A DNA stretch of 64,000 nucleotides. Source: Hyalangium minutum (GTDB lineage: Bacteria; Myxococcota; Myxococcia; Myxococcales; Myxococcaceae). The position numbers and the translations under genes are program-made. The stretch spans positions 310,001 to 374,000 of the forward strand of contig NZ_JMCB01000001.1 in assembly GCF_000737315.1 (NCBI RefSeq), read 5' to 3'. The notes beneath the pieces were generated by a model that searched no databases, was not told the DNA's origin, and saw only the letters and a program-made list of their open reading frames with translations. Within the stretch, counting starts at the first letter, position 1. Each line of letters begins with the position of its first letter. Positions 5,450-64,000 of this stretch are shown piece by piece.

Positions 5450-5460
5450 GCCCTTGTCCT

Positions 5461-6162: not shown

Positions 6163-6211
6163 GGCAGTCCATGCTAGCGGGAGAGGCCCTGGCGCGAACG
6201 TGAAGAAACGT

Positions 6212-6251
6212 AAAAGGCCCCGCGCCCCCTTCTTCAGGAACGCGGGGCTCT
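6212..6251 (-). repeat. 40-bp terminator-like hairpin element, copy 1
   Basis: aaaaggccccgcgcccccttcttcaggaacgcggggctct. Stem GCCCCGCG/CGCGGGGC with TTTT after it on the minus strand; 38/40 identical to 16206-16245. Confidence 0.9.
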
Positions 6252-6291
6252 CCTCAAATGGATTGGGCCTTCTCGCCGCATGGCGTCATTG

Positions 6292-6327
6292 TGGAAACGT
6301 TTACACCAGGCGGAGAAAACGTTTACA
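6292..6327. promoter_or_regulatory. Two LacI-family operator-like sites upstream of lacI
   Basis: TGGAAACGTTTACA (6292-6305) and AGAAAACGTTTACA (6314-6327) have the AAACGTTT core typical of LacI/GalR operators; centres are 22 bp apart. Confidence 0.75.
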
Positions 6328-6342
6328 TGCTGGCGGAAGATC

Positions 6343-29697: not shown

Positions 29698-32600
29698 CTA
29701 CAGAAGCCCGAGCCGCTTCAGCTCCTGGGTGACCTGATCCTCGCTCATCCCCTCGACCTCGGCGGTGATCTTCTGCTGGCGCTCATCCACGAGCTCCTTG
29801 ATGCGCGCCGCCAGCACCGCCACCGTCGATCCCTGAAAGAACTCGGGGAGCCGCATGTCGATGTTGTAGTGCTGGTTGATGCGGTACAGGACACGGGTCG
29901 CCAAGAGGCTCTGGCCGCCCAGCTCGAAGAACTCCGCCTGCCGGTGGGTGGCCGGCACTTCCAGCACCTCACTGAACCATGCCGCGACGCGAATCTCGTC
30001 GCCGGTGCTCAGCGCCTCCTGAGGCCCCGTGGGAGCGGTGCCTGCGGAGCTCCTCTGCGCCAGCGCGGTTCGATCCACTTTGCCGTTCAAGGTCATGGGC
30101 ATCCGCTCCAGGTGCTCGATGTGCGGGATCATGTAGGAAGGCAGGTGCTTGCGCAGGTGGGCGAGGACCGTGCCCGTGGGAACCGGCTCGCCACTGGAGA
30201 CGAGGAAGGCCACGAGGCGGCTGCGCTCGGCTTCACCCTGCACGGCCACCACGGCCTCGGCGATGCCAGGCACCTCGGCCAGCCTTGCTTCCACCTCGCC
30301 GGGCTCGATGCGGTGTCCGCGCACCTTGACCTGATGGTCCTGGCGCCCGAGGAACAGCAGCTCACCGTCGTGCCGTTGCCGGACCCGATCTCCCGTTCGA
30401 TAGCACCGCTCCTGAGTGACTCCGAGCTCATCGATGCCCAGCGTCGGGAAGCGCTGCGCCGTGAGATCCTCGCGGCCGATGTAGCCTTGCGCGACGCCAT
30501 CCCCCGCGATGTAGAGCTCTCCCTCCACGCCGAGCGGAACGGGGCGCTGGTCCTCGTCCAGCACGTACAGCCGTGTGTTCTCGATGGGCTGGCCGAGCGT
30601 CACGCGCTGCTGGCCGTTGCCGAAGTACCTTCTGCTGGACCAGATGGTGGTCTCGGTAGGCCCGTACAGGTTCCACAGCGCCGCGGACTTTGGCATGAGC
30701 ACCCGGGCGAGCTCGTCGCTGAGCGCCTCGCCGCCACACAGCACCTTCAGCCCGGGGCTGCCTGTCCATCCATACTGGAGCAGCATGCGCCAGGTGGAGG
30801 GGGTGCCTTGCATCACCGTGATGCCGTCCGCCTCGAGGTAGCTCAGGAGTGCTTGTGCATCGCTCTGCTCCTCACGGGTGGCCACCCGTACCGTGGCGCC
30901 CACGGTCAGGGGCAGCAACAGCTCCAGGAGCGAGATGTCGAAGCTCAGCGAGGTGACGGCGAGCAGCCTGTCACTATGCTGCATCCCTGGGGCGCGGGCC
31001 ATGGCCCGCAGCAGGTTGACCAGGTTGTGGTGGCGCACGGCCACCCCCTTCGGCTGACCGGTAGACCCCGAGGTGAACATCACATACGCCACGTCCTCGC
31101 CGCGGTTGGGGTGGGGAGGGAAAGGCTCGGTCTGGGGGATGCCATCGTAGACGACGCGCACCGCCCCGCCAGGCACCTCCACCTCACCGGTGTCCGTCAC
31201 CACGTGGCGGGTGCCGGAGGCCTCGATCATGTAGCCGAGCCGGTTGCTGGGGAAGGCCGGGTCCAGCGGGACGAAGCCCGCGCCCGCCAGGAGGCTCCCG
31301 AGGATCGCCTCCACCATGCCCACGCTGCGCTCCATCTTGATGCCCACGAGGGAGCCCGGCCGGACACCTGCCTCGCAAAGACGGGCCGCGAAGCTCCCGG
31401 CATTCCGCAGGAGCTCGCCGTAGGTCCGGGAGTGGGGTCCGGACACCACCGCGATCTTGTCCGGCGAGCGCTGCGCCTGCCGCGCGATCAGCGCGTCCGC
31501 GCCGCCGGCCTCGTCCCACTGCTGGGCGGTGGCGTTCCACTCATTGCGGATACGTTGGACGGTGGAGGGGGCCAGCCGGGGGGCGTCCCGGAGAGGAAGG
31601 CTGGGGTGTGCAATGAGCCAGGGCACGAGCTGCAGCCACCGCTCCGAGAAGAGGCGGACGGTCTCCTCCTCGAAGAGGCGGGTGTTGTAGACGAAGAAGC
31701 TGGTGATCGCGCCCTGGCCGTCGCCGCCGGAGTAGTAATACTCCAGGTCGAACTGGCACTTCTTCGCATCGAGGTAGCGCTGCCGCAACGGCAGGCCGCG
31801 CTCCTCCACGTCAGCGGCGGGGATCTGTCCGAACAGGACCTGGAACACCGGGTTCCGGCTGGTGTCGCGCTCCAGCGCCAGGGACTCCACGATGCGATCG
31901 AAGGACAGGGAGGCATGTCCGAGCGCCTCGCGCAGCGTCCGGCCCACTTGGCTGATGAGCTGGACGAAGCTCATTCCCGGATCCGTCTCGAGCCGCAGCA
32001 CGAGGGTCGTCATCAAGCATCCGACGATGTCCTGCGCTTCCCGCGTCTCACGAGCGGCATAAGGGATGCCAGCCATGAGGTCCCGCTGCCGCGAGTGCTG
32101 ATGCAGGAACACCCCGAAGGCCGCGAGCAGGACCGTGAACACGGAGGTGCTGTTTTCCCGGGCGAAGCGCCTCAGGCCCTCCGATATCGCCTCGTCGAGG
32201 TCCGCGCGGACCTGGCCCCCGTCGTAGGTGAGGTGGCGTGGCCGCTCCTGATCGTAGGGCAGCGAGAGGACCGGCGGGTTGGCCAGCCGCTGGCGCCAGT
32301 AGCGCAGCTCCTCGGCCAGCGTCTCGGGGTTCCTCAGACGCTCCGCGCGGAGGAAGGACACGATGGACGGTGCGGTTCCAGGCAGCTCCTCCCCGGCGTA
32401 GAGCAGCCCGAGGTCGCGCATCATCTGCCGGATCGACCACCCGTCTCCGATCAGGTGATGGAGTGACAGGCCGAGTTGCTGGCTGCCGTCGGGCGCGCGG
32501 AACAGGAAGACCTTGAACAAGGGAGCCTTGTCCATGCGGAACGGCCGGACCAGGTGCGTGCGAACCATGTCCTCGCGTGCACGCGGCTCGTGCGGCAGGA

Positions 32601-33015
32601 GGACCGTCTCGACCGGGATGTTGATCCGCGCCTCGAACATCTGGATGGGGATGCCCTCCAGACTGGGGAAGCTGGCGCGCAGCGCCAGATGCCGGGAAGC
32701 CAGCGCCTCGAAGGCTTGCTGCAGCCGGTGCGGATCAGTGCCGGCGGGTACGTCGAAGAGAAAGGGAATGGTGTAAGCCGTGGACTCGGGGGCGTACTGC
32801 GAGATGAACCAGATGCGCTTCTGCACGCCGCTGAGCCACGCGGCGTGCCGATCGCCCAGCAGCTCGAGGATCCGCGCCTTGTTCGTGGAGAGGAAGGACC
32901 GCTCGCCGTCCGAGAGCTTCCCCGACACCTTCTTGAAGCCGAGACGGCCACCGTCTACCCACAGCTCGACGCCAGAGTTGATCAACTGACCGAGCGAACC
33001 CTCGAACTCAGACAT
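29698..33015 (-). CDS. Single-module NRPS: TubC_N-type docking - C - A(Gly) - PCP - C-terminal docking helix, no TE
   Basis: N-terminal GVELWVDGGRLGF..., HHLIGDG, YVMFTSGSTGQPKG, NLYGPTETT, YRTGD, QVKVRGHRIE, NGKVDR, PCP FFELGGQSL. Specificity residues read by eye as DILQLGLIWK (Gly code). Confidence 0.95.
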   Translation of the reverse strand: MSEFEGSLGQLINSGVELWVDGGRLGFKKVSGKLSDGERSFLSTNKARILELLGDRHAAWLSGVQKRIWFISQYAPESTAYTIPFLFDVPAGTDPHRLQQAFEALASRHLALRASFPSLEGIPIQMFEARINIPVETVLLPHEPRAREDMVRTHLVRPFRMDKAPLFKVFLFRAPDGSQQLGLSLHHLIGDGWSIRQMMRDLGLLYAGEELPGTAPSIVSFLRAERLRNPETLAEELRYWRQRLANPPVLSLPYDQERPRHLTYDGGQVRADLDEAISEGLRRFARENSTSVFTVLLAAFGVFLHQHSRQRDLMAGIPYAARETREAQDIVGCLMTTLVLRLETDPGMSFVQLISQVGRTLREALGHASLSFDRIVESLALERDTSRNPVFQVLFGQIPAADVEERGLPLRQRYLDAKKCQFDLEYYYSGGDGQGAITSFFVYNTRLFEEETVRLFSERWLQLVPWLIAHPSLPLRDAPRLAPSTVQRIRNEWNATAQQWDEAGGADALIARQAQRSPDKIAVVSGPHSRTYGELLRNAGSFAARLCEAGVRPGSLVGIKMERSVGMVEAILGSLLAGAGFVPLDPAFPSNRLGYMIEASGTRHVVTDTGEVEVPGGAVRVVYDGIPQTEPFPPHPNRGEDVAYVMFTSGSTGQPKGVAVRHHNLVNLLRAMARAPGMQHSDRLLAVTSLSFDISLLELLLPLTVGATVRVATREEQSDAQALLSYLEADGITVMQGTPSTWRMLLQYGWTGSPGLKVLCGGEALSDELARVLMPKSAALWNLYGPTETTIWSSRRYFGNGQQRVTLGQPIENTRLYVLDEDQRPVPLGVEGELYIAGDGVAQGYIGREDLTAQRFPTLGIDELGVTQERCYRTGDRVRQRHDGELLFLGRQDHQVKVRGHRIEPGEVEARLAEVPGIAEAVVAVQGEAERSRLVAFLVSSGEPVPTGTVLAHLRKHLPSYMIPHIEHLERMPMTLNGKVDRTALAQRSSAGTAPTGPQEALSTGDEIRVAAWFSEVLEVPATHRQAEFFELGGQSLLATRVLYRINQHYNIDMRLPEFFQGSTVAVLAARIKELVDERQQKITAEVEGMSEDQVTQELKRLGLL

Positions 33016-36000
33016 ACCCGTCCTCCCCCTCGTCAGCAGCGGCTGTCTCTGCGGGCACTCCGAGGGAGATGAGCTCCGTCAGCCGCCCGGCAGCCTGCTG
33101 GATCGTCAGCTCCTCCAGGGGAACGTCCATGGGGATCTTCACGCTGAAGCGAACCTCCAGCGCGTTTCGCAGATCGAGCGCCACGAGTGAGTCGACACCC
33201 AGCTCGTACAAAGTGTGCTGTGGCGAGATGCGCTCCCGGTCGATCCGCAGTGTCGCCGCCAGGGCCGCGCTCAGCGCCTCTTCCACCTCCGGGGTCTCCC
33301 GGGTCTCCGCGGTTCCGCCGGGGGCAGGTGCACGCACGGGGGTTGCCGTGGCTGTGGCGGTGGGCTTCGGGCTCGTCTTGGAAGCCGTACACACGCTGGT
33401 GATGACCTGCTGCCCGAGCCGGTCGGCTCCTTCTCCCGCGACCGAGCGCGCCGACTGGAACCTGCGCTGGCCGAGCATCTGGCGCCAGGAGTCGAAGGAG
33501 AGCCCCGGTGAACCCGGGATGCGGACCTCCGGATCACGGAAGCGCCACCAGCCGTCGAGGAGGCCGAAGGTCAACGTGGTGAAGGGCGACGCCGAGCAGA
33601 TCTCGTTCAGCACCAGCACGCCGCCCGCCGTCATCAGCGTTGCCACGTGCTCGAGGGTCCGGCGGATGTCCGTGGTGGCGTGAAGCACGTTGGAGGCAAT
33701 GACCACGTCGTAGTGGCTGATCGGGACCTCACGCTGGGCGGCCGGATCGCGCTCGATGTCCAGCAAGGCCCAGGACAGATAGGATGCGCGTTCGGCGAAG
33801 CGCTCGGCGAAGTTCCGGAACCCGAGGGACACGTCCGTGTAGGTATAGGAGATGCGGCCCGCGTGCGGCGCGAGGCGATCGATGATGCCCGCGGTCGTTC
33901 CGCCCGTGCCCGCTCCGATCTCGAGCAGGTGGACGGTCCCGCCGTCCGGGAGCTGAGCGAGCCTGGCAAGCACGGCTTTCTCGACAGCCTCCGCAGTGCG
34001 TGCGTTGAAGAAGTCCGCGATGGGGTTGCCGCGATAGACGTTCTCGACGAGGCTCATCGCGCCATCGGGGAACAGGACATGCGTGGCGGGGAGCTCGCCC
34101 CGCAGGACCGGGCTCAGGTGGCTGAGGCACCGTTGCAGCAGGTCGAGCGCTGCATTGGCCGGACCTGGCTGCGCAGCTGCGGGCTGCCCCACCAGCCGGA
34201 TGGCGCCGCCCGTCTCCTCGACGTGACCTGCGGCGCGCAGAATGTCCAGCACCGCCGTGAGGAGGCGCTCATACTTCGGCTGCACGCCGAGCCGTGTGGC
34301 CAGCTCGCCCGAGGAGATGGGCTCTCTGAGGCCGAGCTCCGACAATGCCAGGAAGGTCCGCTGGACGATCAGCTGACGTTGGATCCGCTCCTGCTCAGCG
34401 TACAGGGCTGTGAGGGCGGCGGTCTCGGTGGGGCGCTCAGCCAAGGTCTCGACGGGGTTCTTCCACGAGCGCGGCTGCTCGAACGCCCAGTAGCGGTGGT
34501 CCTCGAAGGGGTAGGACGGAAGGCCCATCCTCAGCGGGCGCCCATAGGGATACAGCAGAGCCCAGTCAACCTCGGTGCCCTGGACCCAACGCCGGCACCA
34601 CACCTCGGGAGCGTCCTCGAGGCGTGGAGGGGACTCTGGAGAGGCCGGTGGCGCACCCGCGTTTCCGTGCACGGCGAGCGGCCCCGGTTTGCCGGCCAAC
34701 CAGCCCGAGAGCACGTCAATGACATCCGCGATGCTCTGGACGGGGCTGGCGAGACGTGCGGGGAGCGGCTCACGGCCCACCTGCAGGGTGTAGATCAGCG
34801 ACAGAAGGCCGCCCTCATCGTGGGGAGAGAGGCCGATCGGGCGTGGTGCGCGGCCCTCGAGCAGGGACAGGAGGTCGCGGCACCGCGCGCGGAGGGTCAC
34901 ATCGTTTGCCGCCGACAGCACGAGACAGTGCGCACGGTGGCCAGTGCCAGGCGTGGCCTGCGGGCCGCTGGCCTCGGCAGGAGGATCTCCCAACACCACG
35001 TGGGCGTTCACGCCTCCGAACCCGAAAGAACTCACGCCGGCCACTCGGTCTCCAGCGGGCCACTGCACGGGCTTGCCGATCAAGAAGAGCGGCGAGCCAT
35101 CGAGCCGCAGGCGCGAGTTCGGCTTCTCGAACCCCTGCAGCCCCACCCTCTTGCCATGGCCCAGGCAGAGCAGGACCTTCACCACGCCTGCGATACCCGC
35201 CGCGGCCTCCAGGTGGCCGAGGTGCGTCTTGACCGCTCCAAGGCCTACGGAGCCAGGCGCGAGCTCTACACCGTGCTCACGCGCCAGAGCGGAGAGCGCC
35301 CTTTTCAGGCCCGCGATCTCGATCGGGTCCCCAAGCGGCGTACCTGTGCCGTGGGTCTCCACATAGGACACCCGGTCTGGTGGGATGCCGGCGTCCCGGA
35401 AGGCCTCTGCGATGACGGAAGACTGCGAATAGGGATTGGGAGAAGTCACCGTGGGGGCGGCCCCTCCGTGGTTCATCGCGGATCCGTACACGGTCCCGTA
35501 GATGCGATCCCCGTCTGCTCGCGCCTGCGCCAGCGGCTTGAGCAGGAGCATCGCAGCGCCCTCACCGCGCACGTATCCGTCGGCGCCTTCATCGAAGGTC
35601 CGGCACCGCCCCCGAGGCGACAGCATGCCGGCCCGCGAGAAGCAGATCCCCGGCGCGGGGATGAGGTTGAGGTTGACCCCGCCCACGAGCGCCTGCTCGC
35701 ACTCACCCAGGCGGATGTCCCGCACCGCTCTGTGGAGCGCCACCAGGGAGCTGGAGCACGCGGTGTCGATGGCGAGGCTCGGCCCCTTGAAGTTGAAGAA
35801 GTAGGAGATGCGGCTGGTGACGAACGAGGCGGCGGCGCCCAGCGCCGTGTAGCCCTCGGCCGGGCTGCTGGAGGCCTCCAGCAGCGGCCTCCAGTCCTGG
35901 CTGGAGGCACCGACGTAGACACCCACCGCCTTCCCGCGCAGGCTGGACGGTGTGTGGGCGGCATCCTCCAGGCACGCCCAGGCCAGCTCCAGCATGATCC

Positions 36001-36280
36001 GGTGGTGCGGATCCATCCAGCCGGCTTCGCGGCCGGTGATGTGGAAGAAGGGCGCGTCGAACCGGTCCACGTCGTCCAGATACGAGCCGGGCTGCGAACC
36101 GTTCTCGGACTCGATGCTGCGGACAGTGCTCCAGTACCAGCGCTCCGCGGGCGTGAGCCTGATGAGGTCCGTCTCGTTCAAGAGGTTGGCCCAGAACGCA
36201 TGTTGGTCCGGGGCCGACGGGAACCGGCAGGCGAGGCCCACGATGGCGATGGCGCCATCCGTGCCTCGGGGTCGCGTCAC
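33008..36280 (-). CDS. AT-less (trans-AT type) PKS module: KS - C-methyltransferase - ACP
   Basis: KS triad DTACSSS / HGTGT / HLGH, GVSSFGFGG, flanking subdomain joined directly to the LPSYPF..RYW linker with no GHSxG AT, SAM motif LLEIGAGTGG, ACP LGVDSL. Confidence 0.93.
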   Translation of the reverse strand: MTRPRGTDGAIAIVGLACRFPSAPDQHAFWANLLNETDLIRLTPAERWYWSTVRSIESENGSQPGSYLDDVDRFDAPFFHITGREAGWMDPHHRIMLELAWACLEDAAHTPSSLRGKAVGVYVGASSQDWRPLLEASSSPAEGYTALGAAASFVTSRISYFFNFKGPSLAIDTACSSSLVALHRAVRDIRLGECEQALVGGVNLNLIPAPGICFSRAGMLSPRGRCRTFDEGADGYVRGEGAAMLLLKPLAQARADGDRIYGTVYGSAMNHGGAAPTVTSPNPYSQSSVIAEAFRDAGIPPDRVSYVETHGTGTPLGDPIEIAGLKRALSALAREHGVELAPGSVGLGAVKTHLGHLEAAAGIAGVVKVLLCLGHGKRVGLQGFEKPNSRLRLDGSPLFLIGKPVQWPAGDRVAGVSSFGFGGVNAHVVLGDPPAEASGPQATPGTGHRAHCLVLSAANDVTLRARCRDLLSLLEGRAPRPIGLSPHDEGGLLSLIYTLQVGREPLPARLASPVQSIADVIDVLSGWLAGKPGPLAVHGNAGAPPASPESPPRLEDAPEVWCRRWVQGTEVDWALLYPYGRPLRMGLPSYPFEDHRYWAFEQPRSWKNPVETLAERPTETAALTALYAEQERIQRQLIVQRTFLALSELGLREPISSGELATRLGVQPKYERLLTAVLDILRAAGHVEETGGAIRLVGQPAAAQPGPANAALDLLQRCLSHLSPVLRGELPATHVLFPDGAMSLVENVYRGNPIADFFNARTAEAVEKAVLARLAQLPDGGTVHLLEIGAGTGGTTAGIIDRLAPHAGRISYTYTDVSLGFRNFAERFAERASYLSWALLDIERDPAAQREVPISHYDVVIASNVLHATTDIRRTLEHVATLMTAGGVLVLNEICSASPFTTLTFGLLDGWWRFRDPEVRIPGSPGLSFDSWRQMLGQRRFQSARSVAGEGADRLGQQVITSVCTASKTSPKPTATATATPVRAPAPGGTAETRETPEVEEALSAALAATLRIDRERISPQHTLYELGVDSLVALDLRNALEVRFSVKIPMDVPLEELTIQQAAGRLTELISLGVPAETAAADEGEDGYV

Positions 36281-37227
36281 TTGGCCACCGCGCGCGTGGT
36301 GATCTCGCGGATGAGCTCACCAATCATGCCCATCTCGGGCTGCTTGCCGGTGACGAAGACCTTGCCGGGCACATCCACGAAGTGCACCTTCCGCTGGTTC
36401 GTCTGAACGGTGCACAGGTGCGTGGCGTACGGCGAGTCCTGCTGGATCTCCTTGTGGTACTGCGCCTCCTCACCCGCGGCGATGACCTCAATGACGCCGC
36501 GGTACAGGGCCGGCTTGTACGCCAGCATGGCCTCCAGGCCCGCGTTGTACACGTTGACGCGGTGGCGGAAGAGAAGCTCCTCCTGATCCGTCTTGAGGTA
36601 GCCGTGCTTGCGCAGGAGATCCAGGAAGACGTCGATCTGGATCGAGTCGTCCTTGCTCAGGACCTCCTCGATCGGGAAGCCCTCCATGGAGTTACCGAGA
36701 AACTCGTCGAACACGAACATGAAGTCCTGGACGACGCGCTTGCGGGGGGACTCCAGGTGGGCCAGCTCCGTCCACTGGCGAGGGAAGAGCGGGAGGAAGT
36801 CGAGGCAGAGGGCAACCTGCTTGCCGCGGTCCTGCAGCTGCTTACAGATCTCGTAACAGACGAGGCCTCCGTTGCAGAAGCCGCCAATGTAGTAGGGGCC
36901 CTCTGGCTGGATCTCGAGGATCCGCTTCACGTCGAAGGCGGCGATCTCCTCGATGGTCCGGTAGGGCTGCTGCTCGCCCTCCAGGCCTGGAGTCTGGCAC
37001 CCGTACATGGACCAGTCCTCTGGGAGGTACGGCAGGTAGTTGCGGAGGTAGTTCACAGTGCCATCAGTGGCAGGGCAGAAGAACAGGATGGGCGCTCCTG
37101 GTGCTCCCTGGCGCAGCAGCACCATGGTGTCTGTCTTCTTCGGGTTCGGCTTGAACTTGAGGTAGTGCTCCAGGAGCATCGCCTTCTTCTGCTCAGTGGA
37201 CAGGCTCTGGTTCTGCTCTGCGGTCAT
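36277..37227 (-). CDS. Stand-alone thioesterase-fold protein with Cys at the nucleophile position and an N-terminal docking-like helix
   Basis: PILFFCP, YGCQTPGLEGE..PYRTIEEIAA, GPYYIGGFCNGG (GxCxG). ATG 37227 with RBS GGAGG; GTGA overlap with the PKS start. Confidence 0.82.
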   Translation of the reverse strand: MTAEQNQSLSTEQKKAMLLEHYLKFKPNPKKTDTMVLLRQGAPGAPILFFCPATDGTVNYLRNYLPYLPEDWSMYGCQTPGLEGEQQPYRTIEEIAAFDVKRILEIQPEGPYYIGGFCNGGLVCYEICKQLQDRGKQVALCLDFLPLFPRQWTELAHLESPRKRVVQDFMFVFDEFLGNSMEGFPIEEVLSKDDSIQIDVFLDLLRKHGYLKTDQEELLFRHRVNVYNAGLEAMLAYKPALYRGVIEVIAAGEEAQYHKEIQQDSPYATHLCTVQTNQRKVHFVDVPGKVFVTGKQPEMGMIGELIREITTRAVAK

Positions 37228-37504
37228 GCTTCCTCCGTTGGCCACTCTGCTGACGGCGCAAACGTCGGCCATCATACTATGGCGATGCGGATCACGCTGA
37301 TCGGCGCGGTGTGCCACGCCTGCTTTCAGAGAACCTGTGACGGCGGGTCGTTACCGACCATGCATGCGTGGCCAAGAGGCACGAGCGGGCGGATCCGTCC
37401 GCGAAGGCTTGTGCCTGATCACGACAACGGGTGAGAGACCTTCCAGGTCTGACGGCGTGCTGGAGCACGCCCTCCAAGCCGGGAGAGCGGCTACAGTCCG
37501 CGCC

Positions 37505-55819: not shown

Positions 55820-56392
55820 CTAACGCAGGAAGCGCTCGTACTTGCGGAGACGCTCGGGGTCGCCCGAGCGCAGATCCTCCTCGCGGTGGGCCTCGTAGGC
55901 GTCTCGGTACTCCGCGCGCGTCATGTGGTTGGGTGAGCTGAAGCGCGCGAGCCGCTCGGGACCGTCGCTGAAGGCATCCTGCTCGCGATCGTCCTCCCAC
56001 ATGCATACCGGGCAGATGTCGTACTCGCCGCGCCAGAGGAACGTGCGGAAGCCGCAGCACGGACACGGCTCCGCGGGAGCGGGCTGGCCTTCGACGGAAT
56101 CCACCTCCACGCCGAGCACCCGCGCCTCCTCGAGCAGGGCCTCGTTGCGGACGATCCGCCGCGCATCTTCCTCGAGGAACTCGAAGAAGGCGTCATAGGT
56201 GGAGCGCCACAGCTTGGGCGGGGAGTCGGGACGCCGGAGCATCTCTTCGCGCACCGACCCGGGGAGCCGCTGCCAACCGTCGGAGTCCTCGTCCCAGTGC
56301 CAGTACGCGTCCAGCTCCGACAGCTTCTCGTGGGGAGGCCGGCGGGCGACGAACTCTCGAGCAATCAAGCGAATGAGCGCGTCGCGCTGCAT
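55820..56392 (-). CDS. CPCC-family cysteine-rich protein
   Basis: PCPCCGFRT....GEYDICPVCMWEDD...SSPNHMT. ATG 56392 with RBS GGAGG. Confidence 0.85.
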   Translation of the reverse strand: MQRDALIRLIAREFVARRPPHEKLSELDAYWHWDEDSDGWQRLPGSVREEMLRRPDSPPKLWRSTYDAFFEFLEEDARRIVRNEALLEEARVLGVEVDSVEGQPAPAEPCPCCGFRTFLWRGEYDICPVCMWEDDREQDAFSDGPERLARFSSPNHMTRAEYRDAYEAHREEDLRSGDPERLRKYERFLR

Positions 56393-56556
56393 GGAGGTCC
56401 TCCGGAGCGGTGATTGCGGCAGGAAGCGGGACACGCCAGGTCTCCTGTTCGGAGGCTTCCATCAAGCCGTTCCTATACTTGCTCCTCTCTCTCCGTCACC
56501 TAGCATGTGCACCCCGTTCCGCCTCGCGGCATGACCGCGGGGGTGAAGAGACCTCC

Positions 56557-58230
56557 GTGCTCTGCTACTTCCGGTGCAAAAAATGTGGCCAGGTGAGCGA
56601 CCTCTTGCTGGAGAGCGAGGCCAAGACACTCAAGCCCAGCTGCAACACCTGCGCGAAGACGGGAGGCAGCGAGGTCGAGACGAAGCGCACGTTCGCCTTC
56701 GCCTTCGGTTGCCGGACCTGCTGGAAGACCTGGCGCTGGTGCACGCCCTCCAACTATGCCACGGCCAAGGCGGCGCGGCCCGACTGCCCCCAGTGCAACA
56801 GCAACAAAGAGGTCTATTTCATCCCCTCTCAGGTCACCAAGAAGAAGGCTGAGAAGCGGCAGCGCCCCGGCATGCTGGATGATCCCCAGCATGACCCCAG
56901 CCGCTATGACACGCTGGATGTCGAGAAGACCCTCGTCGGTGTGAAGCGGACCAAGCGAGAGGAACTCGCGAAGAAGGAGGAGGACTTCATCTTCACGTCG
57001 CTGGAGGATCCGTCCTTCGCCACGGTGTCTCGCATGGAGGGCACCTACAAACAGCAGCGGGTGCGGCAGAAGAAGTTCCTGAAACGGTTCGGCGAGATGA
57101 AGACGGGAAGCAATCCGCAGAAGACCTCGGAGCTGAAGACAGGCCGGGTCATCCCGAGATCCGAGTACGACAAGAAGCTGAAGTACAAGGTGGATGTGAA
57201 GGGCACGACGTACCCGAAGATGAACGCCTCCGCGCCCACCGTCGTCACCGATGTCCGGATCATCCCGCGCTCATCGACGTGGGACTACCGCGAGCTGGGG
57301 CCGAACTCCTTCCTCCGCCGGCTCAGCTCCATCCTGTACATGATTCATTTCGGCGTCGATGACCGGGCCCTCTACAAGAAGGGATCGGAGGACCACAAAA
57401 AGGCCTCCAAGGCGTTCAAATCCGACGACGAGAAGTACAAGCCCGTCGAGGTCCAGGCCATGTGGGCAGGCAATTCACTCTACCTGTCCACGAACAACCA
57501 CCTCTTCTCGGAGCTGCTGCTCGAAGCGCTCCAGACGAAGACGACGGTCCAGGCGCTTGTCGCCGACATCAACCTGGGGAGTGGAGGAACCTATAAGTCG
57601 CTCCCCCGGAACTTCACCAGTGACCATGTCGACAAGGTGAAAGAGTACCAGCAGGCAATCGTCACGAACACGGAGTCGGCCTACCGCTCCTATTTCCTCT
57701 TCCAATGGACGTATGTGTTCCAGCAGCTCCGCGAGGCGGTCGAGTTCACCAACATCAGCAGCGTCACGATCAAGCGCAGCGGCACCCACTACGACTCGTG
57801 GACGATCGCCCCTGGTGACAAGGCGCTGACGGCCAACCGCGTGTTCGTCGTCCTGCCCGAGACGGACACTCCCTCGAAGGGGCTCTTCGTGAACAAGGAG
57901 GTCCACGCGGAGGAGCTCTTCTATCCCATCCTGATGGAACTCGACGCCAAGGGCCGGTTGACAGAGCAGAGCCCGGCGTTTGTCGGGGGCGTCAAGACGG
58001 CGTGCTTCACCTGCGCTCTGGTCCTCAACGCGGCGTCCACGCGGCTCCAGAAGAAGCTGATCCTCCCCACGGACGCCTACGGCCACTACTGGGAGAACTC
58101 CGGGAAGCATGTCTCCGCGCTGACGTTCACGCCCAACACGCAGACCCTCGTGTTCTCGGACAACACCACCTCTCACAATGTCTACGACACGGAGATGCCG
58201 TGGTCTCCCAAGAGCCCCGATCACAAGTGA
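56557..58230 (+). CDS. Zn-ribbon protein with C-terminal deaminase-like motif (putative nucleic-acid deaminase toxin)
   Basis: N-terminal CKKC, CNTC, CRTC, CPQC; C-terminal HAE (57904-57912) and GGVKTACFTC (Cys at 58003 and 58012). GTG 56557 preferred. Confidence 0.7.
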   Translation: MLCYFRCKKCGQVSDLLLESEAKTLKPSCNTCAKTGGSEVETKRTFAFAFGCRTCWKTWRWCTPSNYATAKAARPDCPQCNSNKEVYFIPSQVTKKKAEKRQRPGMLDDPQHDPSRYDTLDVEKTLVGVKRTKREELAKKEEDFIFTSLEDPSFATVSRMEGTYKQQRVRQKKFLKRFGEMKTGSNPQKTSELKTGRVIPRSEYDKKLKYKVDVKGTTYPKMNASAPTVVTDVRIIPRSSTWDYRELGPNSFLRRLSSILYMIHFGVDDRALYKKGSEDHKKASKAFKSDDEKYKPVEVQAMWAGNSLYLSTNNHLFSELLLEALQTKTTVQALVADINLGSGGTYKSLPRNFTSDHVDKVKEYQQAIVTNTESAYRSYFLFQWTYVFQQLREAVEFTNISSVTIKRSGTHYDSWTIAPGDKALTANRVFVVLPETDTPSKGLFVNKEVHAEELFYPILMELDAKGRLTEQSPAFVGGVKTACFTCALVLNAASTRLQKKLILPTDAYGHYWENSGKHVSALTFTPNTQTLVFSDNTTSHNVYDTEMPWSPKSPDHK

Positions 58231-58243
58231 GCAAGGAGTGAAC

Positions 58244-59068
58244 GTGGGCACAGACGACTTCGACGGCTGGATCCAGAGCCAGATCGCCTCACTGACTCAG
58301 GAGCGCGATGCATTGTGTGCCAAGCGTGATGAGGCCCGGGCGCACGCGACTCCCCGATCGCTGACGGAGGAGCGAGAGCTGGTGGGCTTGCTGGGAGAGT
58401 TCTTCCGCCGCCATCGCTGCGTGAGCGGTACGCTCGAGCACATCCGCAGGCGACGTAACACCGAGACGGTTGTCTACGGCATTCGCGAGAACGGCGACCC
58501 GGACACCTTCTTCTCCTTCAAGGGCGAACCATTCTGGGTCCGGATCGAGGAGTTCCTCGAAACTCAGGAAGGCGAGTGCCGGCTGGAGCTCCGGGTCGAT
58601 CTCGCCAAAGGCATGTCATCCGCGAGCTTCCTCGACGGCGAGAGCTACCGAAACTGGGATGAGGCGGCTGAGCTGAGCAGCGGGGTGGACCAACTCGAAC
58701 GCCGGATCAAGGGCTTCCGAGGCCTCAATGTGAGCAAGGAGCCCTTCGGTAAGCCACTGGCCCGCAAGGTGGCGCAGGCGCTGAGCCGAGGGGACCTGTG
58801 CTTCTCCCACAGGGACTACTGCGGTACGGGTCTGTTCCTGAGCCAGTCGGGCCACTACCTCTACGCCACCGTCGAAGATGGTGGCCCGGCGAACGTCCTC
58901 CGCGAGTTTCCGAGCATCGAGCCCTTCGTCGAGTGGCTTGCGCAGCAGAGCGACGCTTCGCTGTCGCGGTTCGGCGAGACCGACTTCGTCTTCCTCAACC
59001 AGACCCTCCGCCGCCAACGCCTGGAGGAGTTCATTGCCGGCCAGCACGGGTACAGGACCCTTTCATGA
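58244..59068 (+). CDS. Hypothetical protein, putative immunity/partner of the upstream deaminase-like gene
   Basis: Starts 13 bp after the upstream stop with RBS AAGGAG; coiled N-terminus; C-terminal HRDYCGTGL...F.EWLAQQSD domain. The function is inferred from position only. Confidence 0.6.
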   Translation: MGTDDFDGWIQSQIASLTQERDALCAKRDEARAHATPRSLTEERELVGLLGEFFRRHRCVSGTLEHIRRRRNTETVVYGIRENGDPDTFFSFKGEPFWVRIEEFLETQEGECRLELRVDLAKGMSSASFLDGESYRNWDEAAELSSGVDQLERRIKGFRGLNVSKEPFGKPLARKVAQALSRGDLCFSHRDYCGTGLFLSQSGHYLYATVEDGGPANVLREFPSIEPFVEWLAQQSDASLSRFGETDFVFLNQTLRRQRLEEFIAGQHGYRTLS

Positions 59069-61398
59069 CTCCAAAACCTCTCATTCTCTTCGTCGCGCTC
59101 GCCGCTGTGCTGCTTGCGCGTTGCACCTCTCCTGAGACTGGCACGGCCCAGTTCGCCGTCTCCGCGAGGCAGGCGCTTGCCTCCAACATCTCCCGCGTCA
59201 CCGTGACTTCCAGCGCGGCGGATATCCCCTCTGTCACAGTGGAGCTCGCCCAGACCCACGGCCTATGGGGCGGCATCATTGGCAACATTCCCGCCGGCTC
59301 CAACCGCGCCTTTCACGCGCAGGCTTTCGATGCTTCGGGCGCTCTGCTCTTCGAAGGTACCGCCTCCGGCGTCACCATCTCCGAAAGCCAGACCACCCTG
59401 GTGGCCATCACCCTCCAGGAGGTGAATGCTCCGCCGCCGCTCGACAACGAGGCCCCGATTATCGACTCGCTGGTGGCCACAGCCACCACGGTGGCCCCGG
59501 GCGGCAACCTGGTCCTGCAGGCCACCGCCCACGACCCCAACCCGGGTGACACCCTCACCTACGCCTGGTCTTCCACCGCGGGCACCTTCTCCGCGAGCAC
59601 CTCGGATGTCACGGGGTGGATCGCGCCTCTCACGCTTGGCGCTCAGCGGCTCACCTTGACCGTCACGGACCCAGGCGGCCTCTCCTCGAGCATTTCCCTG
59701 AACGTCAACGTGGCCACGAGCGGACCGGAGGGAGAAGCGCAGCTCTCCATCACCTTCAACAGCTCGCCTCGGCTTGCCTGGGTGTCTGCCTCCCCCACGC
59801 AGCTCTCCCCCGGGCAGACCACCTCGGTCTCTGTCGCAGGCACTGATCCGGATGAGGATGGCCTCTCCTACTCCTGGAGCGCCACGTGTGCAGGCGCTTG
59901 GGCCAATGCCTCCTCCAGCTCCGCTCAGTTCACGCCCTCGGCCCTGCCTGCCGTGGCCTGCAACAACTGCCGCCTCACGGTCTCCGTGTCGGATGGGCGT
60001 GGCGGGCAAACCACCGGCACCGTGGCCCTGTGCGTGAGCGATACCCCGCCTATCAACCACTTCCCTCCTGTCATCATCCGCTCCTACCGATCCTCGGACA
60101 CGGCCACGGCGGGCCAGGAGCTCACATATGAGGTGGAGGCCAGGGATCCCGAGAACTCCGCGCTGACCTTCTCCTGGGCCGCCAGCACTGGCTCTCTGGG
60201 AGCTCCGGCCCATGGCACTTCCCACAGCCGCATCACTTGGACCGCGCCCTCCTGCCTCGATGCCTCCACGGCCGTCACCGTCACCGTCACCAATGCCTCC
60301 CACCTGATGGCCACGAGAACCTTCACGGTGTCCGGACTGCCCGCGTGTTCCAATGCCGGCTGGTCCCCAGCTGGCTCCTTGACTCTCGGCCGTTTGTACC
60401 ACTCCGCGACCGTGCTACCCGGCGGCAGGGTGCTCACCACAGGAGGGCGGACCAACAACGGCACCCTCGATACGTCCGAGCTGTATGAGCCGGTGTCCAA
60501 CACCTGGCGCCCCACCTCCCCCATGCTGATGCCGCGAGAGCGGCACTCGGCGACGCTGCTCCTCAACGGCAAAGTGCTCGTTACCGCCGGAGAGAGCTAT
60601 GGCGAATGGGGCTACAGCGAAAACGTTACAGCCGCGGAGCTGTATGACCCGGCCTCAGGCTCCTGGAGCATGACCGGCTCCTTGGCCTCGCCCCGAGACC
60701 AACACACGGCGACGCGACTGACCGATGGCCGGGTACTCGTGACCGGGGGACGCCCTTCCAATGGCTCCATCAGTGCCGCTGCCTCGGCGGAGGTGTACGA
60801 CCCGGCTTCGGGGACCTGGAGCGCCACGGGCTCCATGATCACCCGTCGCTCGGGGCACCGAGCGACGCTGCTGTCCAATGGAAAGGTGATGGTCTCGGGT
60901 GGACAACATGAGGGCACCTCTCTCTCAACGGCGGAGGTGTACGACCCTGCTTCGGGAACCTGGAGCGCCACGGGCTCTCTCGCAGAGGCGCGTTATGATC
61001 ACACCGCGACGCTGCTGCCCAATGGCAAGGTGCTCGTCACGGGTGGGTATGGAGCGGGCGCTGCCATTGCCACCTCGGAGGTGTATGACCCAGCCACGGG
61101 CACCTGGAGCGCCACCCCGTCCATGAGCGTGCCGCGCATTTGGCACACCGCGACGCTGCTTCCCAACGGCAAGGTGCTCGTCGCAGGCGGGTTCAACTTT
61201 CTGCATTATGAGCTCGCGACAGCGGAGGTGTATGACCCAGTCACGAGCACTTGGAGCAGCACCCCGTCCATGGCCTCGCGCCGCAGATTCCACGTGGCGG
61301 CGCTCATGCCAGACGGCAAGGTGCTCGTCGTGAGTGGAAACGGCTGGGAGGGGCAGGTTCTCGGCACTCTCGCGTCCTCGGAGCTGTACACCCCCTAA
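59065..61398 (+). CDS. Kelch-repeat lipoprotein with Ig-like domains
   Basis: Lipobox-like LLARC, three AP/P.I..L-type Ig repeats (AHDPNPGD.L.Y.W), seven R..H.AT.L.(N/D)G.VLV.GG Kelch blades. ATGA overlap with the upstream gene. Confidence 0.88.
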   Translation: MTPKPLILFVALAAVLLARCTSPETGTAQFAVSARQALASNISRVTVTSSAADIPSVTVELAQTHGLWGGIIGNIPAGSNRAFHAQAFDASGALLFEGTASGVTISESQTTLVAITLQEVNAPPPLDNEAPIIDSLVATATTVAPGGNLVLQATAHDPNPGDTLTYAWSSTAGTFSASTSDVTGWIAPLTLGAQRLTLTVTDPGGLSSSISLNVNVATSGPEGEAQLSITFNSSPRLAWVSASPTQLSPGQTTSVSVAGTDPDEDGLSYSWSATCAGAWANASSSSAQFTPSALPAVACNNCRLTVSVSDGRGGQTTGTVALCVSDTPPINHFPPVIIRSYRSSDTATAGQELTYEVEARDPENSALTFSWAASTGSLGAPAHGTSHSRITWTAPSCLDASTAVTVTVTNASHLMATRTFTVSGLPACSNAGWSPAGSLTLGRLYHSATVLPGGRVLTTGGRTNNGTLDTSELYEPVSNTWRPTSPMLMPRERHSATLLLNGKVLVTAGESYGEWGYSENVTAAELYDPASGSWSMTGSLASPRDQHTATRLTDGRVLVTGGRPSNGSISAAASAEVYDPASGTWSATGSMITRRSGHRATLLSNGKVMVSGGQHEGTSLSTAEVYDPASGTWSATGSLAEARYDHTATLLPNGKVLVTGGYGAGAAIATSEVYDPATGTWSATPSMSVPRIWHTATLLPNGKVLVAGGFNFLHYELATAEVYDPVTSTWSSTPSMASRRRFHVAALMPDGKVLVVSGNGWEGQVLGTLASSELYTP

Positions 61399-61453: not shown

Positions 61454-62500
61454 CTAACGGCGCGTGGCTCCACCGGCGGCGGCCTCACGTTGGGCGGAGA
61501 GCCAGGCCTGCCGGGCCTCCAGGGGCAGGAGGCTGTGCTCGAAGCCCGCGGCGGCGAGGGAGAGGATCTGCTCAGCGCTCCAAGAGAAGCGGTCCGCGCA
61601 GCGCAGGTACTCGTCGGTCAGGGTGGTGGAGAACAACGGGGGATCATCGCTCGCCAGGGTGATGGAGAGCCCAGCCTCCAACAGTCGCGGCAGAGGGTGC
61701 TGGCCGAGCTCGGAGCAGACGCCCAGCGAGACGTTGCTGCTCGGGCAAACCTCAAGGGGGATCCGCTTCTCGGCGAGGTACTGGACCAGCGAGGCATCCT
61801 CCAGACAGCGAACCCCGTGGCCCAGCCGCTCGGCGCCCAGCCACCTCAGGGCCGCCCAGATGCTCTCGGGGCCGGCATGCTCGCCGGCATGGGGCAGGCT
61901 GTGCAGGCCCTCGTCCCGAGCCCGCGTGAAGAGCGGCGCGAATGGCTGGAGCGGCCACTCCAGCGACTCGGGCCCCGAGAGCCCCAGCCCCACCACCCCG
62001 TGCTCCCGGCCACGCAGGGCCAGCTCGAGGGTGGGCTCGGCCCGGTCGGCCTGATTCCGGAGGGTGTCGAACACCCAAGCGAGCTCGACAGCATGCTCCT
62101 CCCGTGCTCGCGCTCGGCCTTCGGCCAGGCCTGACAGCAGCTCATCCCCTGAGACACCGCGCGCCACGTGCGTCATCGGCGTCACAGTGACCTCGGCATA
62201 GCGCACGTTCTGCGCGGCGAGCCCCCGTGCCAGGTCGACGGTGATGGCGGTGAAGTCCTCGGCATCCGTGAGGCAACTCGAGAGGGCGAGATAGAGACGA
62301 AGGAAATCGTCGAACGAGGTGAACCGGTAGTGCCGCCGCAGCCCCTCGACTCCCTCGTCGCTTCCCGGGAGCGAGCGGCCATGCCTGTTCGCGAGCCTCA
62401 GGGCCAGCTCGGGTTGGATGCTCCCTTCGAGATGGAGGTGGAGTTCGGCCTTGGGCAGGCGGCGGATAAGCTCATCCCTGGGCAGTGCGAGTCCTGGCAT
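61454..62500 (-). CDS. add: Adenosine deaminase family protein
   Basis: PKAELHLHLEGS, VRYAE, HAGE, ERLGHG, LEVCPSSN, SDDP. ATG 62500. Confidence 0.92.
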   Translation of the reverse strand: MPGLALPRDELIRRLPKAELHLHLEGSIQPELALRLANRHGRSLPGSDEGVEGLRRHYRFTSFDDFLRLYLALSSCLTDAEDFTAITVDLARGLAAQNVRYAEVTVTPMTHVARGVSGDELLSGLAEGRARAREEHAVELAWVFDTLRNQADRAEPTLELALRGREHGVVGLGLSGPESLEWPLQPFAPLFTRARDEGLHSLPHAGEHAGPESIWAALRWLGAERLGHGVRCLEDASLVQYLAEKRIPLEVCPSSNVSLGVCSELGQHPLPRLLEAGLSITLASDDPPLFSTTLTDEYLRCADRFSWSAEQILSLAAAGFEHSLLPLEARQAWLSAQREAAAGGATRR

Positions 62501-62504
62501 GTCC

Positions 62505-64000
62505 TCAGTCCCGAGCGCCCAGCCGCACCAGCTGGCCCGGCCGCTCGTCCGTGATGGCGCCGTGGCGCTGCACCGCGCGGCCCGCGACGAAGGTCGCCAC
62601 ATAGCCCTCGGCGGTCTGCACGAAGCGCTTGCCCCCGGCGGGCAGGTCACGCCGCAGCTCAGGCCTGCGGAGCGACAGGCGTGACGGCTCGATCACATTG
62701 AGATCGGCGCGCATCCCCGGTGCGATCACACCCCGGTCGGACAGGCCCAGGTAGCGCGCGTTGCGCGAGGTCAGCAGCTCTACCGTGCGCTCCAGGGGCA
62801 GTCGCTCCCGCTCGCGGTCGCGTGCCCACCACGTCAACAGGAAGGTCGGGAAGCTCGCGTCGCAGACCGTGCCCACGTGCGCACCCGCATCCGAGAGCCC
62901 TGCGAGCGCCCGCGGATGCTCGAGCATCCGCCGGACCACCTCGAGCGAGCCGCCGTTGTAGTTGAAGATCGGGAAGTAGATGAGGTTCGAGCCGTCCCCC
63001 TCGCAGAGGTAGTCGTACAGCGCGGCGAGGGCCGGCTGTCCACTGTGCTTCGCGCGCACCAGGAACGAGTCGGCCAGCGCGGGCTCGTAGTTCGGCCTCT
63101 CGCCGAGAGGGAACATCCGCCCACTGATGAGCTCGATGCGCTGCAACAGGAGGTCCACCAAGGGGGGGATGGGCGTGCCGTCACCCGCCAGCCGCTCGGG
63201 CTTCTCGGAGAGGATGCGCGCGCGCCGGGCGGGCTCGCGCAGGGCCGCAGCGCGCTCGGCCAGCGGCAGCGAGGAGATCTCCTTGTAGCCCGGGAAGCCG
63301 ATGAAGGGATGAAAGCTCGCGTCCAGCCCCAGCAACACGCCGATCCCGCGCGCCGCCGCCTGCAGGTACAGCGGCAACCCCCGCGCCACTGCGGCCTCGA
63401 CGCGCTCCCGAATGGCCTCGTACTGCTCGCCGCCTGGGTCGCGCTGCAGCCAGGTCATCGACAGCGGCCGGCCCGCGGCACGGGCGAGCTGCTCGACCAG
63501 ATCGAACTCGGCGTGGAACCGGCCCGGGTCGCGCAGCAGATCGAAGTCGCTCACCACTTGAAGCACGCCGTGCGAGAGCCCCTGGAAAGCCTGGGCGAGG
63601 CCCGCAAGCTCGTGGGCGCTCGCCTCCGAGGCAGGGGTCTCCCGGCCCTCCGCCGTGCGGTGGTTGTCGGTGCGGCCGGTGGTGAAGCCCGCGGCCCCCG
63701 CCTGGAGCGCGGCGTGCAGCAACTGGCGCATCGTCGAGATGTCCTCGGGCGTCGCGGCCTGGTGGGCCTCGGCGCGCTCGCCCATTACATAGATCCGCAG
63801 CGGGTCGTGAGGAACCTGGACGAGGAAGTCCAGGCTGTGAGGCACTGCCGCGAGCGCGTCCATGTACTGGGGGAAGCTCTCCCAGCCCCAGCGGATGCCC
63901 TCGGCGAGCGCGGCGCCGGGAATGTCCTCCACGCCTTCCATCAGGCTGATCAGGCGAGGGTGCTCGTTCGGGCGCACGGGCGCGAAGCCGACGCCGCAGT
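62505..64000 (-). CDS. N-acyl-D-amino-acid deacylase-family amidohydrolase, N-terminus beyond the window
   Basis: [58 protein letters not shown]. Confidence 0.9.

Follow-up and report, generated by a model that had tools for sequence, protein, structure and literature searches.

A gene at 56557..58230 (+) in a 64,000-nucleotide stretch of Hyalangium minutum DNA (contig NZ_JMCB01000001.1, positions 310,001 to 374,000; the whole stretch is called the window here, and coordinates are counted from its first letter) encodes a 557-residue protein that joins two tandem zinc ribbons and a basic linker to a C-terminal domain with the motifs and the predicted fold of zinc-dependent deaminases. We propose that this protein is a self-contained cytoplasmic zinc-dependent nucleic-acid deaminase whose restricted action would edit or mutate RNA or single-stranded DNA (ssDNA), in conflict or in regulation; this reading ranks first among those considered, and we put its probability at about one half. 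To our knowledge, bacterial deaminases without a housekeeping function are almost all secreted toxins checked by an immunity protein. The gene described here is a lone gene without an inhibitor or an export signal, and its product must therefore possess intrinsic specificity or be subject to regulation. The fold and clade are known ones; they are combined here with an undescribed double-ribbon architecture and a strictly solitary genomic habit, and a literature search returned no description of this family.

A conserved gene for a zinc-ribbon protein with deaminase motifs

In a program-made list of open reading frames (ORFs) this frame is open from 56410 to 58230 (+). The longer ORF, which begins with a GTG at 56410 and would encode 606 residues with a faintly signal- or lipobox-like extension (FLYLLLSLRHLAC), was rejected, as the homologs all begin at the MLxYFxC position; a start at the GTG at 56557 fits the N-termini of 22/22 database homologs, and the gene closes with a TGA. 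Moreover, the 606-residue ORF is noncoding, because frame-breaking indels lie upstream of 56557 among the window and two related loci, L006 and L015. In comparisons with orthologs of 91% and 84% identity, the ratio of nonsynonymous to synonymous substitution (dN/dS) is ~0.3 overall: the catalytic domain is at 0.24, and the ribbons range over 0.22-0.36 and the linker over 0.36-0.63. This is therefore a real gene that evolves moderately fast, with purifying selection on all three regions. The GC content of the gene is 0.61 vs 0.67, a dip that could suggest recent horizontal transfer, an explanation ruled out by a third-position GC (GC3) of 0.88 that is on par with the neighbouring genes. The low total GC reflects the Lys-rich amino-acid composition, not recent import. 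A conserved region of 79 nt directly upstream (56478..56556, +) moves with the gene, in that blastn homology to L006 begins at 56478 and the sequence further upstream is unrelated. A promoter belonging to the gene itself and its 5' untranslated region probably lie here (TTGCTC ... TAGCAT, then GAAGAG before the GTG); a consensus scan of 56300-59400 for sigma-70 promoters and terminators gave nothing above shuffled expectation and no strong sigma-70 match.

The protein contains 12 Cys residues, of which ten form five CxxC pairs. Four of these pairs (C7-C10, C29-C32, C52-C55 and C77-C80; CxxC at 56575-56586, 56641-56652, 56710-56721 and 56785-56796) belong to the two tandem zinc ribbons of residues 1-92 (56557..56832, +). 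This N-terminus gives weak matches to Zn_ribbon_8 in Pfam (E 0.0023) and, among sequences in the Protein Data Bank (PDB), to Tim15 and RPB9-type ribbons, and β-strands are modelled within it at residues 2-7, 40-52, 58-63 and 86-89. Residues 93-224 (56833..57228, +) form a Lys/Arg-rich, partly helical linker (17% Lys, 25% Lys+Arg), on which constraint is weaker than anywhere else in the protein; the AlphaFold2 (AF2) model has a long helix at 152-178, and its local confidence score (pLDDT) falls to 46-70 around residues 120-150. The C-terminal deaminase domain occupies residues 225-557 (57229..58230, +). It contains the hairpin PVEVQAMWAGNSLYLSTNN (residues 296-314; 57442..57498, +), a β1-turn-β2 unit that ends in a conserved Asn; the sole HxE motif of the protein, HAE (H450, A451, E452; 57904..57912, +), which stands at the start of helix 2 and comprises a putative zinc ligand and catalytic Glu; and GGVKTACFTC (residues 477-486; 57985..58014, +), in which GxxK is followed by the putative zinc ligands of the fifth pair, C483-C486, where strand 3 ends and helix 3 begins.

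The motif residues are invariant in a rare family. A search of 5.8 billion proteins yielded 22 relatives of the window protein, a profile run exhaustively against 1.84 billion cluster representatives only 12 strong ones, and a scan of one genome per GTDB species six homolog loci. All named sources are Myxococcaceae (Corallococcus, Citreicoccus, Vitiosangium and metagenome-assembled genomes, MAGs), and the annotation is 'hypothetical' throughout, with the exception of one UniRef name, 'Zinc ribbon domain-containing protein'. In an alignment of 23 sequences that are 39-92% identical to the window protein (A1), the eight N-terminal Cys residues, H450, A451, E452, G478, K480, C483 and C486 are invariant, a pattern that lies far beyond chance. 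Also invariant are a WDYR...FxRRL helix, a PxExQ...W...SL...N stretch that includes E298 and N313, and a TExPxSP tail. The exhaustive profile search additionally recovered distant relatives of 17-28% identity (P0040 and P0044-P0053; alignment A2), and in these exactly E298, N313, H450, E452, G478, K480, C483 and C486 are retained. Homologs were absent from plasmids and phages searched with tblastn, and pattern scans of viral and metagenome contigs returned only one 1.1-kb fragment. One further match, the metagenomic C2H2 zinc-finger protein P0043 (1533 aa), aligns with the WDYRELGPNSFLRRL segment of the profile 24 times at a period of 64 residues and is probably a repeat artefact.

The C-terminal tail motif TEMPWSP (residues 545-551; 58189..58209, +), in which T545, E546, P548, S550 and P551 are invariant, lies in a region of low model confidence that is probably disordered. 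The P-x-S-P part of the invariant T-E-x-P-x-S-P resembles the site of a proline-directed Ser/Thr kinase, and a Pkinase-domain gene is present elsewhere in the window (22228-24006). In the distant relatives, acidic Ser/Asp/Glu-rich tails take the place of TExPxSP.

Predicted fold and affinity to known deaminases

Confident AF2 models were obtained for the full-length protein (pLDDT 87.3, global template-modelling score, pTM, 0.86) and for the C-terminal domain (pLDDT 89.9, pTM 0.90). In both, the elements assigned by DSSP fit the deaminase core α1-β1-β2-α2-β3-α3-β4-(α4)-β5 in their order along the chain, a comparison of element order only. The modelled order is α1-β1-β2-(insert)-α2-β3-α3-β4-loop-β5: a helix at 248-261; a hairpin of strands 299-304 and 307-312 with N313 at its end; a helix at 451-464 that opens with HAE; a strand at 474-478; a helix at 484-500 that opens with CxxC; and then a short strand, a loop and a strand at 529-533. 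The insert comprises ~135 residues (about 315-445), in which six helices (315-328 to 385-394) are modelled along with strands at 346-348, 400-406 and 429-434. The loop, of ~25 residues (505-528), carries the invariant residues G509, W512, S515, H518 and F524.

The placement of H-x-E at the start of helix 2 and of CxxC at the start of helix 3 is that of the zinc site of the deaminase superfamily. The conserved Asn that follows strand 2 in the superfamily is also present, as N313 closes strand 307-312; in TadA and APOBEC this Asn contacts the substrate nucleoside. The GxxK that directly precedes CxxC in the OTT_1508 clade (PMC3239186, Table 1) is found as G477-G-V-K480-T-x-C483-x-x-C486. There is no clear axxP motif of the kind present in the OTT_1508 strand-4 loop; the window protein has F-T-P there.

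The profile searches point in the same direction. Pfam returned only two weak matches on the window protein, the Zn_ribbon_8 match and OTT_1508_deam (PF14441). The latter scores 16.1 bits with the full protein and 19.5 bits when the domain is taken by itself, where the Pfam gathering threshold is 27 bits. OTT_1508_deam is the top Pfam match of the window protein and in 8/10 other full-length members (13.9-19.6 bits or none) and is matched by 15/24 domain sequences with a best E of 2.7e-5; the alignments always run from HAE to CxxC, over profile positions 1-43 of 64, and it is the sole recurrent Pfam match. Two of the 24 domain sequences weakly match dCMP_cyt_deam_1, and scans of the deaminase against NCBIfam and PADLOC gave no match. 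A profile of the family searched against PDB chains aligned with APOBEC3G catalytic domains in nine of ten matches, on RHAE...PCFSC, at non-significant E-values of 1.1-1.5. A Foldseek comparison, proposed in an earlier sequence-only reading of this DNA, was run on the model of residues 225-557: most of the top 50 PDB matches are APOBEC3A, B, C, G or H, at E-values of 1-5 and probabilities of at most 0.2, which are not significant. With the full-length model, APOBEC3 and phage dCMP deaminase are among the best matches, and a Foldseek search of viral structures (BFVD) produced unrelated noise at E-values similar to those of the PDB matches. An hhalign comparison of the family profile with Escherichia coli TadA covered only 18 columns around PCxxC with a probability of 0.6% and was uninformative. 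We regard the structure and profile matches as concordant hints rather than proof.

The distant relatives, which include toxin-type proteins fused to eCIS_core, add a further hint. Weak but concordant, these lines of evidence support the assignment of the protein, on predicted fold and motifs, as a zinc-dependent base deaminase and a remote relative of the toxin and RNA-editing deaminases of the OTT_1508-like type. In this respect the sequence-only reading has held. Every element that it described is present, namely the 557 residues, four N-terminal CxxC pairs, the Lys-rich linker, HAE...GGVKTACFTC and a second gene 13 nt downstream, and its proposal of a C-terminal Zn-dependent deaminase with OTT_1508-like affinity agrees with the invariant motifs, the models and the recurrent sub-threshold PF14441 match.

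Proposed mechanism of a self-contained deaminase

In the mechanism that we propose, H450, C483 and C486 would bind the catalytic zinc, with E452 acting as the proton shuttle and N313, at the end of strand 2, contacting the target nucleoside. Two further zinc ions would hold the ribbons. The pTM of 0.86 over 557 residues suggests a confident placement of the ribbons and linker relative to the catalytic domain, and we envisage that they pack on this domain and supply nucleic-acid binding and the targeting or selection of the substrate. The gene has no dedicated immunity or antitoxin partner, and protection of the carrier cell would therefore have to come from narrow substrate specificity or from regulation. 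Such an enzyme would most likely edit or mutate RNA or ssDNA inside the producer in a restricted way, either against invading genetic elements or as a form of regulated editing, much as APOBEC or the fungal OLD enzymes do.

Genomic setting and the possibility of an exported effector

The flanks of the homologs were compared over about seven distinct locus types, including an all-against-all comparison of the flanking ORFs, and no neighbour was common to the locus types beyond the synteny of close relatives. In Corallococcus coralloides and C. exiguus the neighbours are a Bmp lipoprotein gene, a 323-aa gene and an amidase gene; in Citreicoccus they are a sulfatase gene and a Topo-RecQ fusion with no small gene between; JPH2 has the same locus as Citreicoccus plus an inserted DUF5953 gene; and in Vitiosangium the neighbour is an IS200-like transposase gene. 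At L006 a secreted Endonuclease_NS gene follows the deaminase homolog. At the Corallococcus praedator locus L013 (9003-11489), and also at L012, genes for GH43, RNase H and a VgrG spike protein (Phage_GPD, Gp5_trimer_C) follow on the same strand. The candidates for a conserved partner, that is, the 323-aa gene of Corallococcus, DUF5953 (L003), IS200-like (L002), Endonuclease_NS (L006), GH43 (L013) and a methyl-accepting chemotaxis protein gene (L014), were rejected, being mutually dissimilar and also unlike the neighbours in the window.

Several observations weigh against the proposal of a cytoplasmic nucleic-acid deaminase. As regards the assignment itself, all PF14441 scores (14-20 bits) fall short of the 27-bit cut-off, the E-values of the Foldseek and PDB profile matches are those given above, and it is the pTM by itself that suggests the packing of the N-terminus onto the catalytic domain in the model. 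A known defence system is not supported by PADLOC. The remaining observations speak for an alternative in which the protein is an exported effector or toxin deaminase without an immunity gene, which would leave the cell by an unrecognised route (for example as cargo of a type VI secretion system, T6SS, or through another contact-dependent system) and act on prey bacteria or on the cells of eukaryotes, for example amoebae, fungi or nematodes. The ribbons and the basic stretch would then be a delivery or localisation module, in which KKRK-like stretches could be nuclear-localisation signals. Consistent with this alternative, the domain forms the C-terminal module of two of the distant relatives, P0050 and P0051, which have a toxin-type N-terminus of the eCIS_core type (DUF4157, 'PVC metallopeptidase'; eCIS, extracellular contractile injection system; PVC, Photorhabdus virulence cassette), and other distant relatives are solitary in a bacterium of 34.5% GC and have acidic Ser-rich tails. 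For the OTT_1508 clade at large, delivery by PVC, T6SS and type VII secretion systems and immunity-less versions directed against eukaryotic hosts have been described (PMC3239186). The VgrG gene at L012 and L013 lies 2.3 kb downstream of the homolog on the same strand, and no other locus type has a secretion-system gene close by. Finally, the distribution of the family is patchy and accessory, with 37-50% identity between congeners, and this spread fits, together with the dN/dS of 0.3, a fast-evolving secreted weapon equally well.

Other findings stand against export. Scans of the 557-residue protein against Pfam and NCBIfam found no signal, PAAR, RHS, LXG, MIX, eCIS_core or other trafficking domain, and no hydrophobic segment that could serve as a signal peptide or membrane helix was found, the maximal Kyte-Doolittle mean over 19 residues being 1.49; the absence of a delivery domain, claimed in the sequence-only reading, thus stands. 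Secretion-system genes are lacking both from the window and from six of the seven locus types, and at L013 the GH43 and RNase H genes intervene between the homolog and the VgrG gene. Additionally, the pTM of 0.86 suggests an N-terminus packed on the enzyme, not a free delivery module. We therefore consider an exported effector, which ranks second among the readings, possible and on balance doubtful; if it were true, it would indicate that myxobacteria have a delivery route that has gone unrecognised.

The 64 kb of the window contain genes for sugar utilisation, TonB/ExbBD, an alpha-1,3-glucanase, a caspase-domain protein, a short-chain dehydrogenase/reductase, TetR, a CPCC protein, a Kelch lipoprotein, an adenosine deaminase, an amidohydrolase, a polyketide synthase (PKS) and a nonribosomal peptide synthetase (NRPS), a kinase and an RTX protein, and within the window no T6SS, eCIS, phage, plasmid or defence-island genes were found. 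Divergent from the deaminase gene lies the gene of a 204-aa Cys_rich_CPCC protein (55820-56434, -; PF14206, E 1e-12). This protein was rejected as part of a unit with the deaminase, given that the sequence shared with L006 begins only within the intergenic region, at 56478; the CPCC gene is syntenic only in L015. PADLOC-DB v2 gave no match for the deaminase, for the CPCC protein or for the product of the gene downstream of the deaminase, and the genes around the deaminase gene serve metabolism, transport and regulation. An anti-phage or mutator function, as raised in the sequence-only reading, is a conceivable one.

Several homolog loci have features of their own. At L003 the DUF5953 gene (7718-8473) lies between the homolog and the gene of a 1709-aa Toprim-Topoisomerase-DEAD-RecQ fusion, and it is not found at the syntenic loci L004 and L005. 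At L014, from a Myxococcales MAG (1390-1989 and 4729-6522), the stop of the homolog overlaps the start of the methyl-accepting chemotaxis gene by 4 nt, and a TadA-like deaminase gene lies 1.1 kb upstream of the homolog. The distant relative P0049 is solitary on a bacterial contig of 34.5% GC (L019, 8001-9332), between an NmrA-like and a YggU/DUF167 gene, with no partner or secretion gene within 8 kb upstream.

The downstream gene is an independent neighbour

The gene that follows the deaminase gene (58244..59068, +) starts with a GTG and encodes 274 residues. Because it lies on the same strand, 13 nt beyond the deaminase stop that ends at 58230, and has an AAGGAG ribosome-binding site in the spacer, the two genes are probably co-transcribed here. 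The sequence-only reading regarded the two as a toxin-immunity or toxin-antitoxin module in which the 274-aa protein neutralises the deaminase. The arrangement is indeed kept in the sister locus L015, which is 94% identical and syntenic throughout, and the 274-aa protein belongs to a small family (13 matches, from Archangium and metagenomes) without known function, the C-terminus of which is strikingly conserved (SHRDYCGxG...WLAQQSDASLS...NQT).

The comparison of loci argues against such a pair. By tblastn, the 274-aa gene is present in none of the homolog loci except L015. It is lacking at L006, where the deaminase homolog is 84% identical, and at L004 and L005 no small gene of any kind adjoins the deaminase gene. 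Conversely, a copy of 80% identity occurs at L007 behind an unrelated 452-aa lipoprotein-like gene, and one of 43% identity at L008 behind a Peptidase_M74/LysM gene. The 274-aa protein matches no known immunity or antitoxin family: searches of Pfam, NCBIfam, PADLOC and the PDB were all negative, and a PDB profile search with its family, which returned only designed leucine-rich repeats and TTC5, was set aside as noise. DNA homology between the window and L006 extends from 56478 to 58232 only, ending 2 nt past the deaminase stop codon, and that between the window and L007 extends from 58232 to 59041 only. The two limits meet at 58232, and the deaminase and 274-aa genes are therefore separate modules that abut in this lineage. 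At the level of sequence, then, the 274-aa gene is an independent neighbour, not an immunity partner, and a toxin-immunity pair appears very unlikely. Of the sequence-only reading as a whole, the deaminase without a delivery domain survives and the cognate downstream partner does not; the neighbourhood survey that it had suggested revealed no conserved partner gene over about seven locus types. The 274-aa family itself stands behind three unrelated upstream genes in three loci (the window, L007 and L008), with gaps of at most 49 nt.

Small-molecule or inactive versions of the fold

We consider it slightly less probable still that the protein is a metabolic deaminase of free nucleotides, nucleosides or bases or of an intermediate of secondary metabolism. 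Many such enzymes do have the deaminase fold, the weak dCMP_cyt_deam_1 matches and the phage dCMP deaminase among the Foldseek matches are of this type, and PKS/NRPS genes are present in the window. Against this stand the nearest signals, which are all from nucleic-acid deaminase clades (OTT_1508, APOBEC3), and the two zinc ribbons with a linker of 25% Lys/Arg, which point to a polyanionic substrate. Furthermore, the gene has no metabolic operon context, its locus changes between species, and the PKS/NRPS genes are ~20 kb away and unlinked in the homolog loci. A catalytically inert zinc-binding regulator or scaffold that keeps the deaminase fold, for which inactive paralogs such as Tad3 and the Perkinsus versions and the tendency of C-terminal elements of the OTT_1508 clade to degenerate offer precedents (PMC3239186), is hardly credible in view of the H, E, C, C and strand-2 Asn residues that are invariant down to 39% identity and also in the relatives of 17-28%.

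Also encoded in the window, 2.4 kb downstream, is a classical TIM-barrel adenosine deaminase (61454-62650, -; PF00962, E 3e-84); it has an unrelated fold and is unlinked in the homolog loci. The region 29698-37317 (-) encodes an NRPS module (condensation, adenylation and peptidyl carrier protein domains, with a TubC docking domain), a PKS module (ketosynthase, methyltransferase and acyl carrier protein domains) and a thioesterase, with an adjoining cytochrome P450, and constitutes a small hybrid biosynthetic cluster.

Comparison with known deaminase systems

The bacterial toxins of the DddA-DddI, SsdA-SsdI and MafB19 types share with the window protein a bacterial origin and the zinc-dependent deaminase fold that is predicted for it. 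They differ from it in possessing delivery domains (PAAR, RHS, LXG or MafB N-termini) and a conserved adjacent immunity gene, both of which were sought here and not found. DddA and derivatives of TadA have become genome-editing tools. A bacterial deaminase that is fused to ribbons and has no partner can credibly be put forward as a candidate site-specific editor. If site-defined editing of RNA or DNA proves true, TadA would no longer be the limit of dedicated nucleic-acid editing in bacteria.

AID and the APOBEC3 proteins, which are intracellular restriction-type mutators that have no immunity protein, provide the best structure and profile match, a non-significant one, over HAE...PCxxC. The match is distant (E ~1-5, TM-scores 0.2-0.26), and the APOBECs are vertebrate proteins that lack the ~135-residue insert and the zinc ribbons. 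AID/APOBEC was placed in the same Helix-4 division as the OTT_1508 clade by Iyer, Zhang, Rogozin & Aravind (2011; PMC3239186).

The OTT_1508 clade is similar to the window protein in a larger number of features. Both have HxE on helix 2, a GxxK that immediately precedes the CxxC of helix 3, and an insert; the long loop at strand 4 is shared in part, in that a conserved His is present in it. In both, relatives are fused to a PVC/eCIS metallopeptidase-like domain, the 'PVC metallopeptidase' (eCIS_core) architecture that Iyer et al. list for the clade, and versions without an immunity gene occur; immunity-less OTT_1508-like deaminases and intracellular deaminases fused to Zn modules are on record (PMC3239186). 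In contrast to the clade, the wider group studied here has its invariant Gly two residues before the Lys (-2) instead of three (-3), G478 and K480 being the only GxxK positions that are invariant in the distant relatives, and the axxP of the strand-4 loop is not evident. The double zinc ribbon with a basic linker is undescribed for the clade, and the present family is restricted to Myxococcaceae.

A further parallel is the OLD-ZAO system of Neurospora crassa (Honda et al. 2025; summary in PMC12754623). In that summary, the fungal OLD proteins are OTT_1508-like deaminases that make a few site-specific A-to-I edits in mRNA within an antiviral response. As they are described there, OLD enzymes resemble the window protein in being stand-alone, in their HxE...CxxC motifs, in having no immunity protein and in an association with zinc-finger modules, and also in the intracellular site and the conflict-related setting that we propose for the window protein. 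They differ in that A-to-I activity on RNA has been shown for OLD, and in that the zinc fingers reside in a neighbouring transcription-factor gene, the mRNA of which is edited, whereas the ribbons are fused to the enzyme here; the likeness is one of description, drawn from the summary. A specific and bolder form of our proposal, which we hold to be rather improbable as it stands, is that the window protein is a bacterial counterpart of fungal OLD: a single-polypeptide, site-restricted editor of RNA (A-to-I or C-to-U) or ssDNA in which the ribbons would read the target and which would be tolerated without an inhibitor. It would then become the first bacterial enzyme besides TadA to be dedicated to nucleic-acid editing; its targeting module would be self-contained, and it would offer a new, compact scaffold for base editing. 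Site-defined editing by this family, if true, would link the bacterial OTT_1508-like clade functionally to the antiviral editing of the fungal OLD enzymes.

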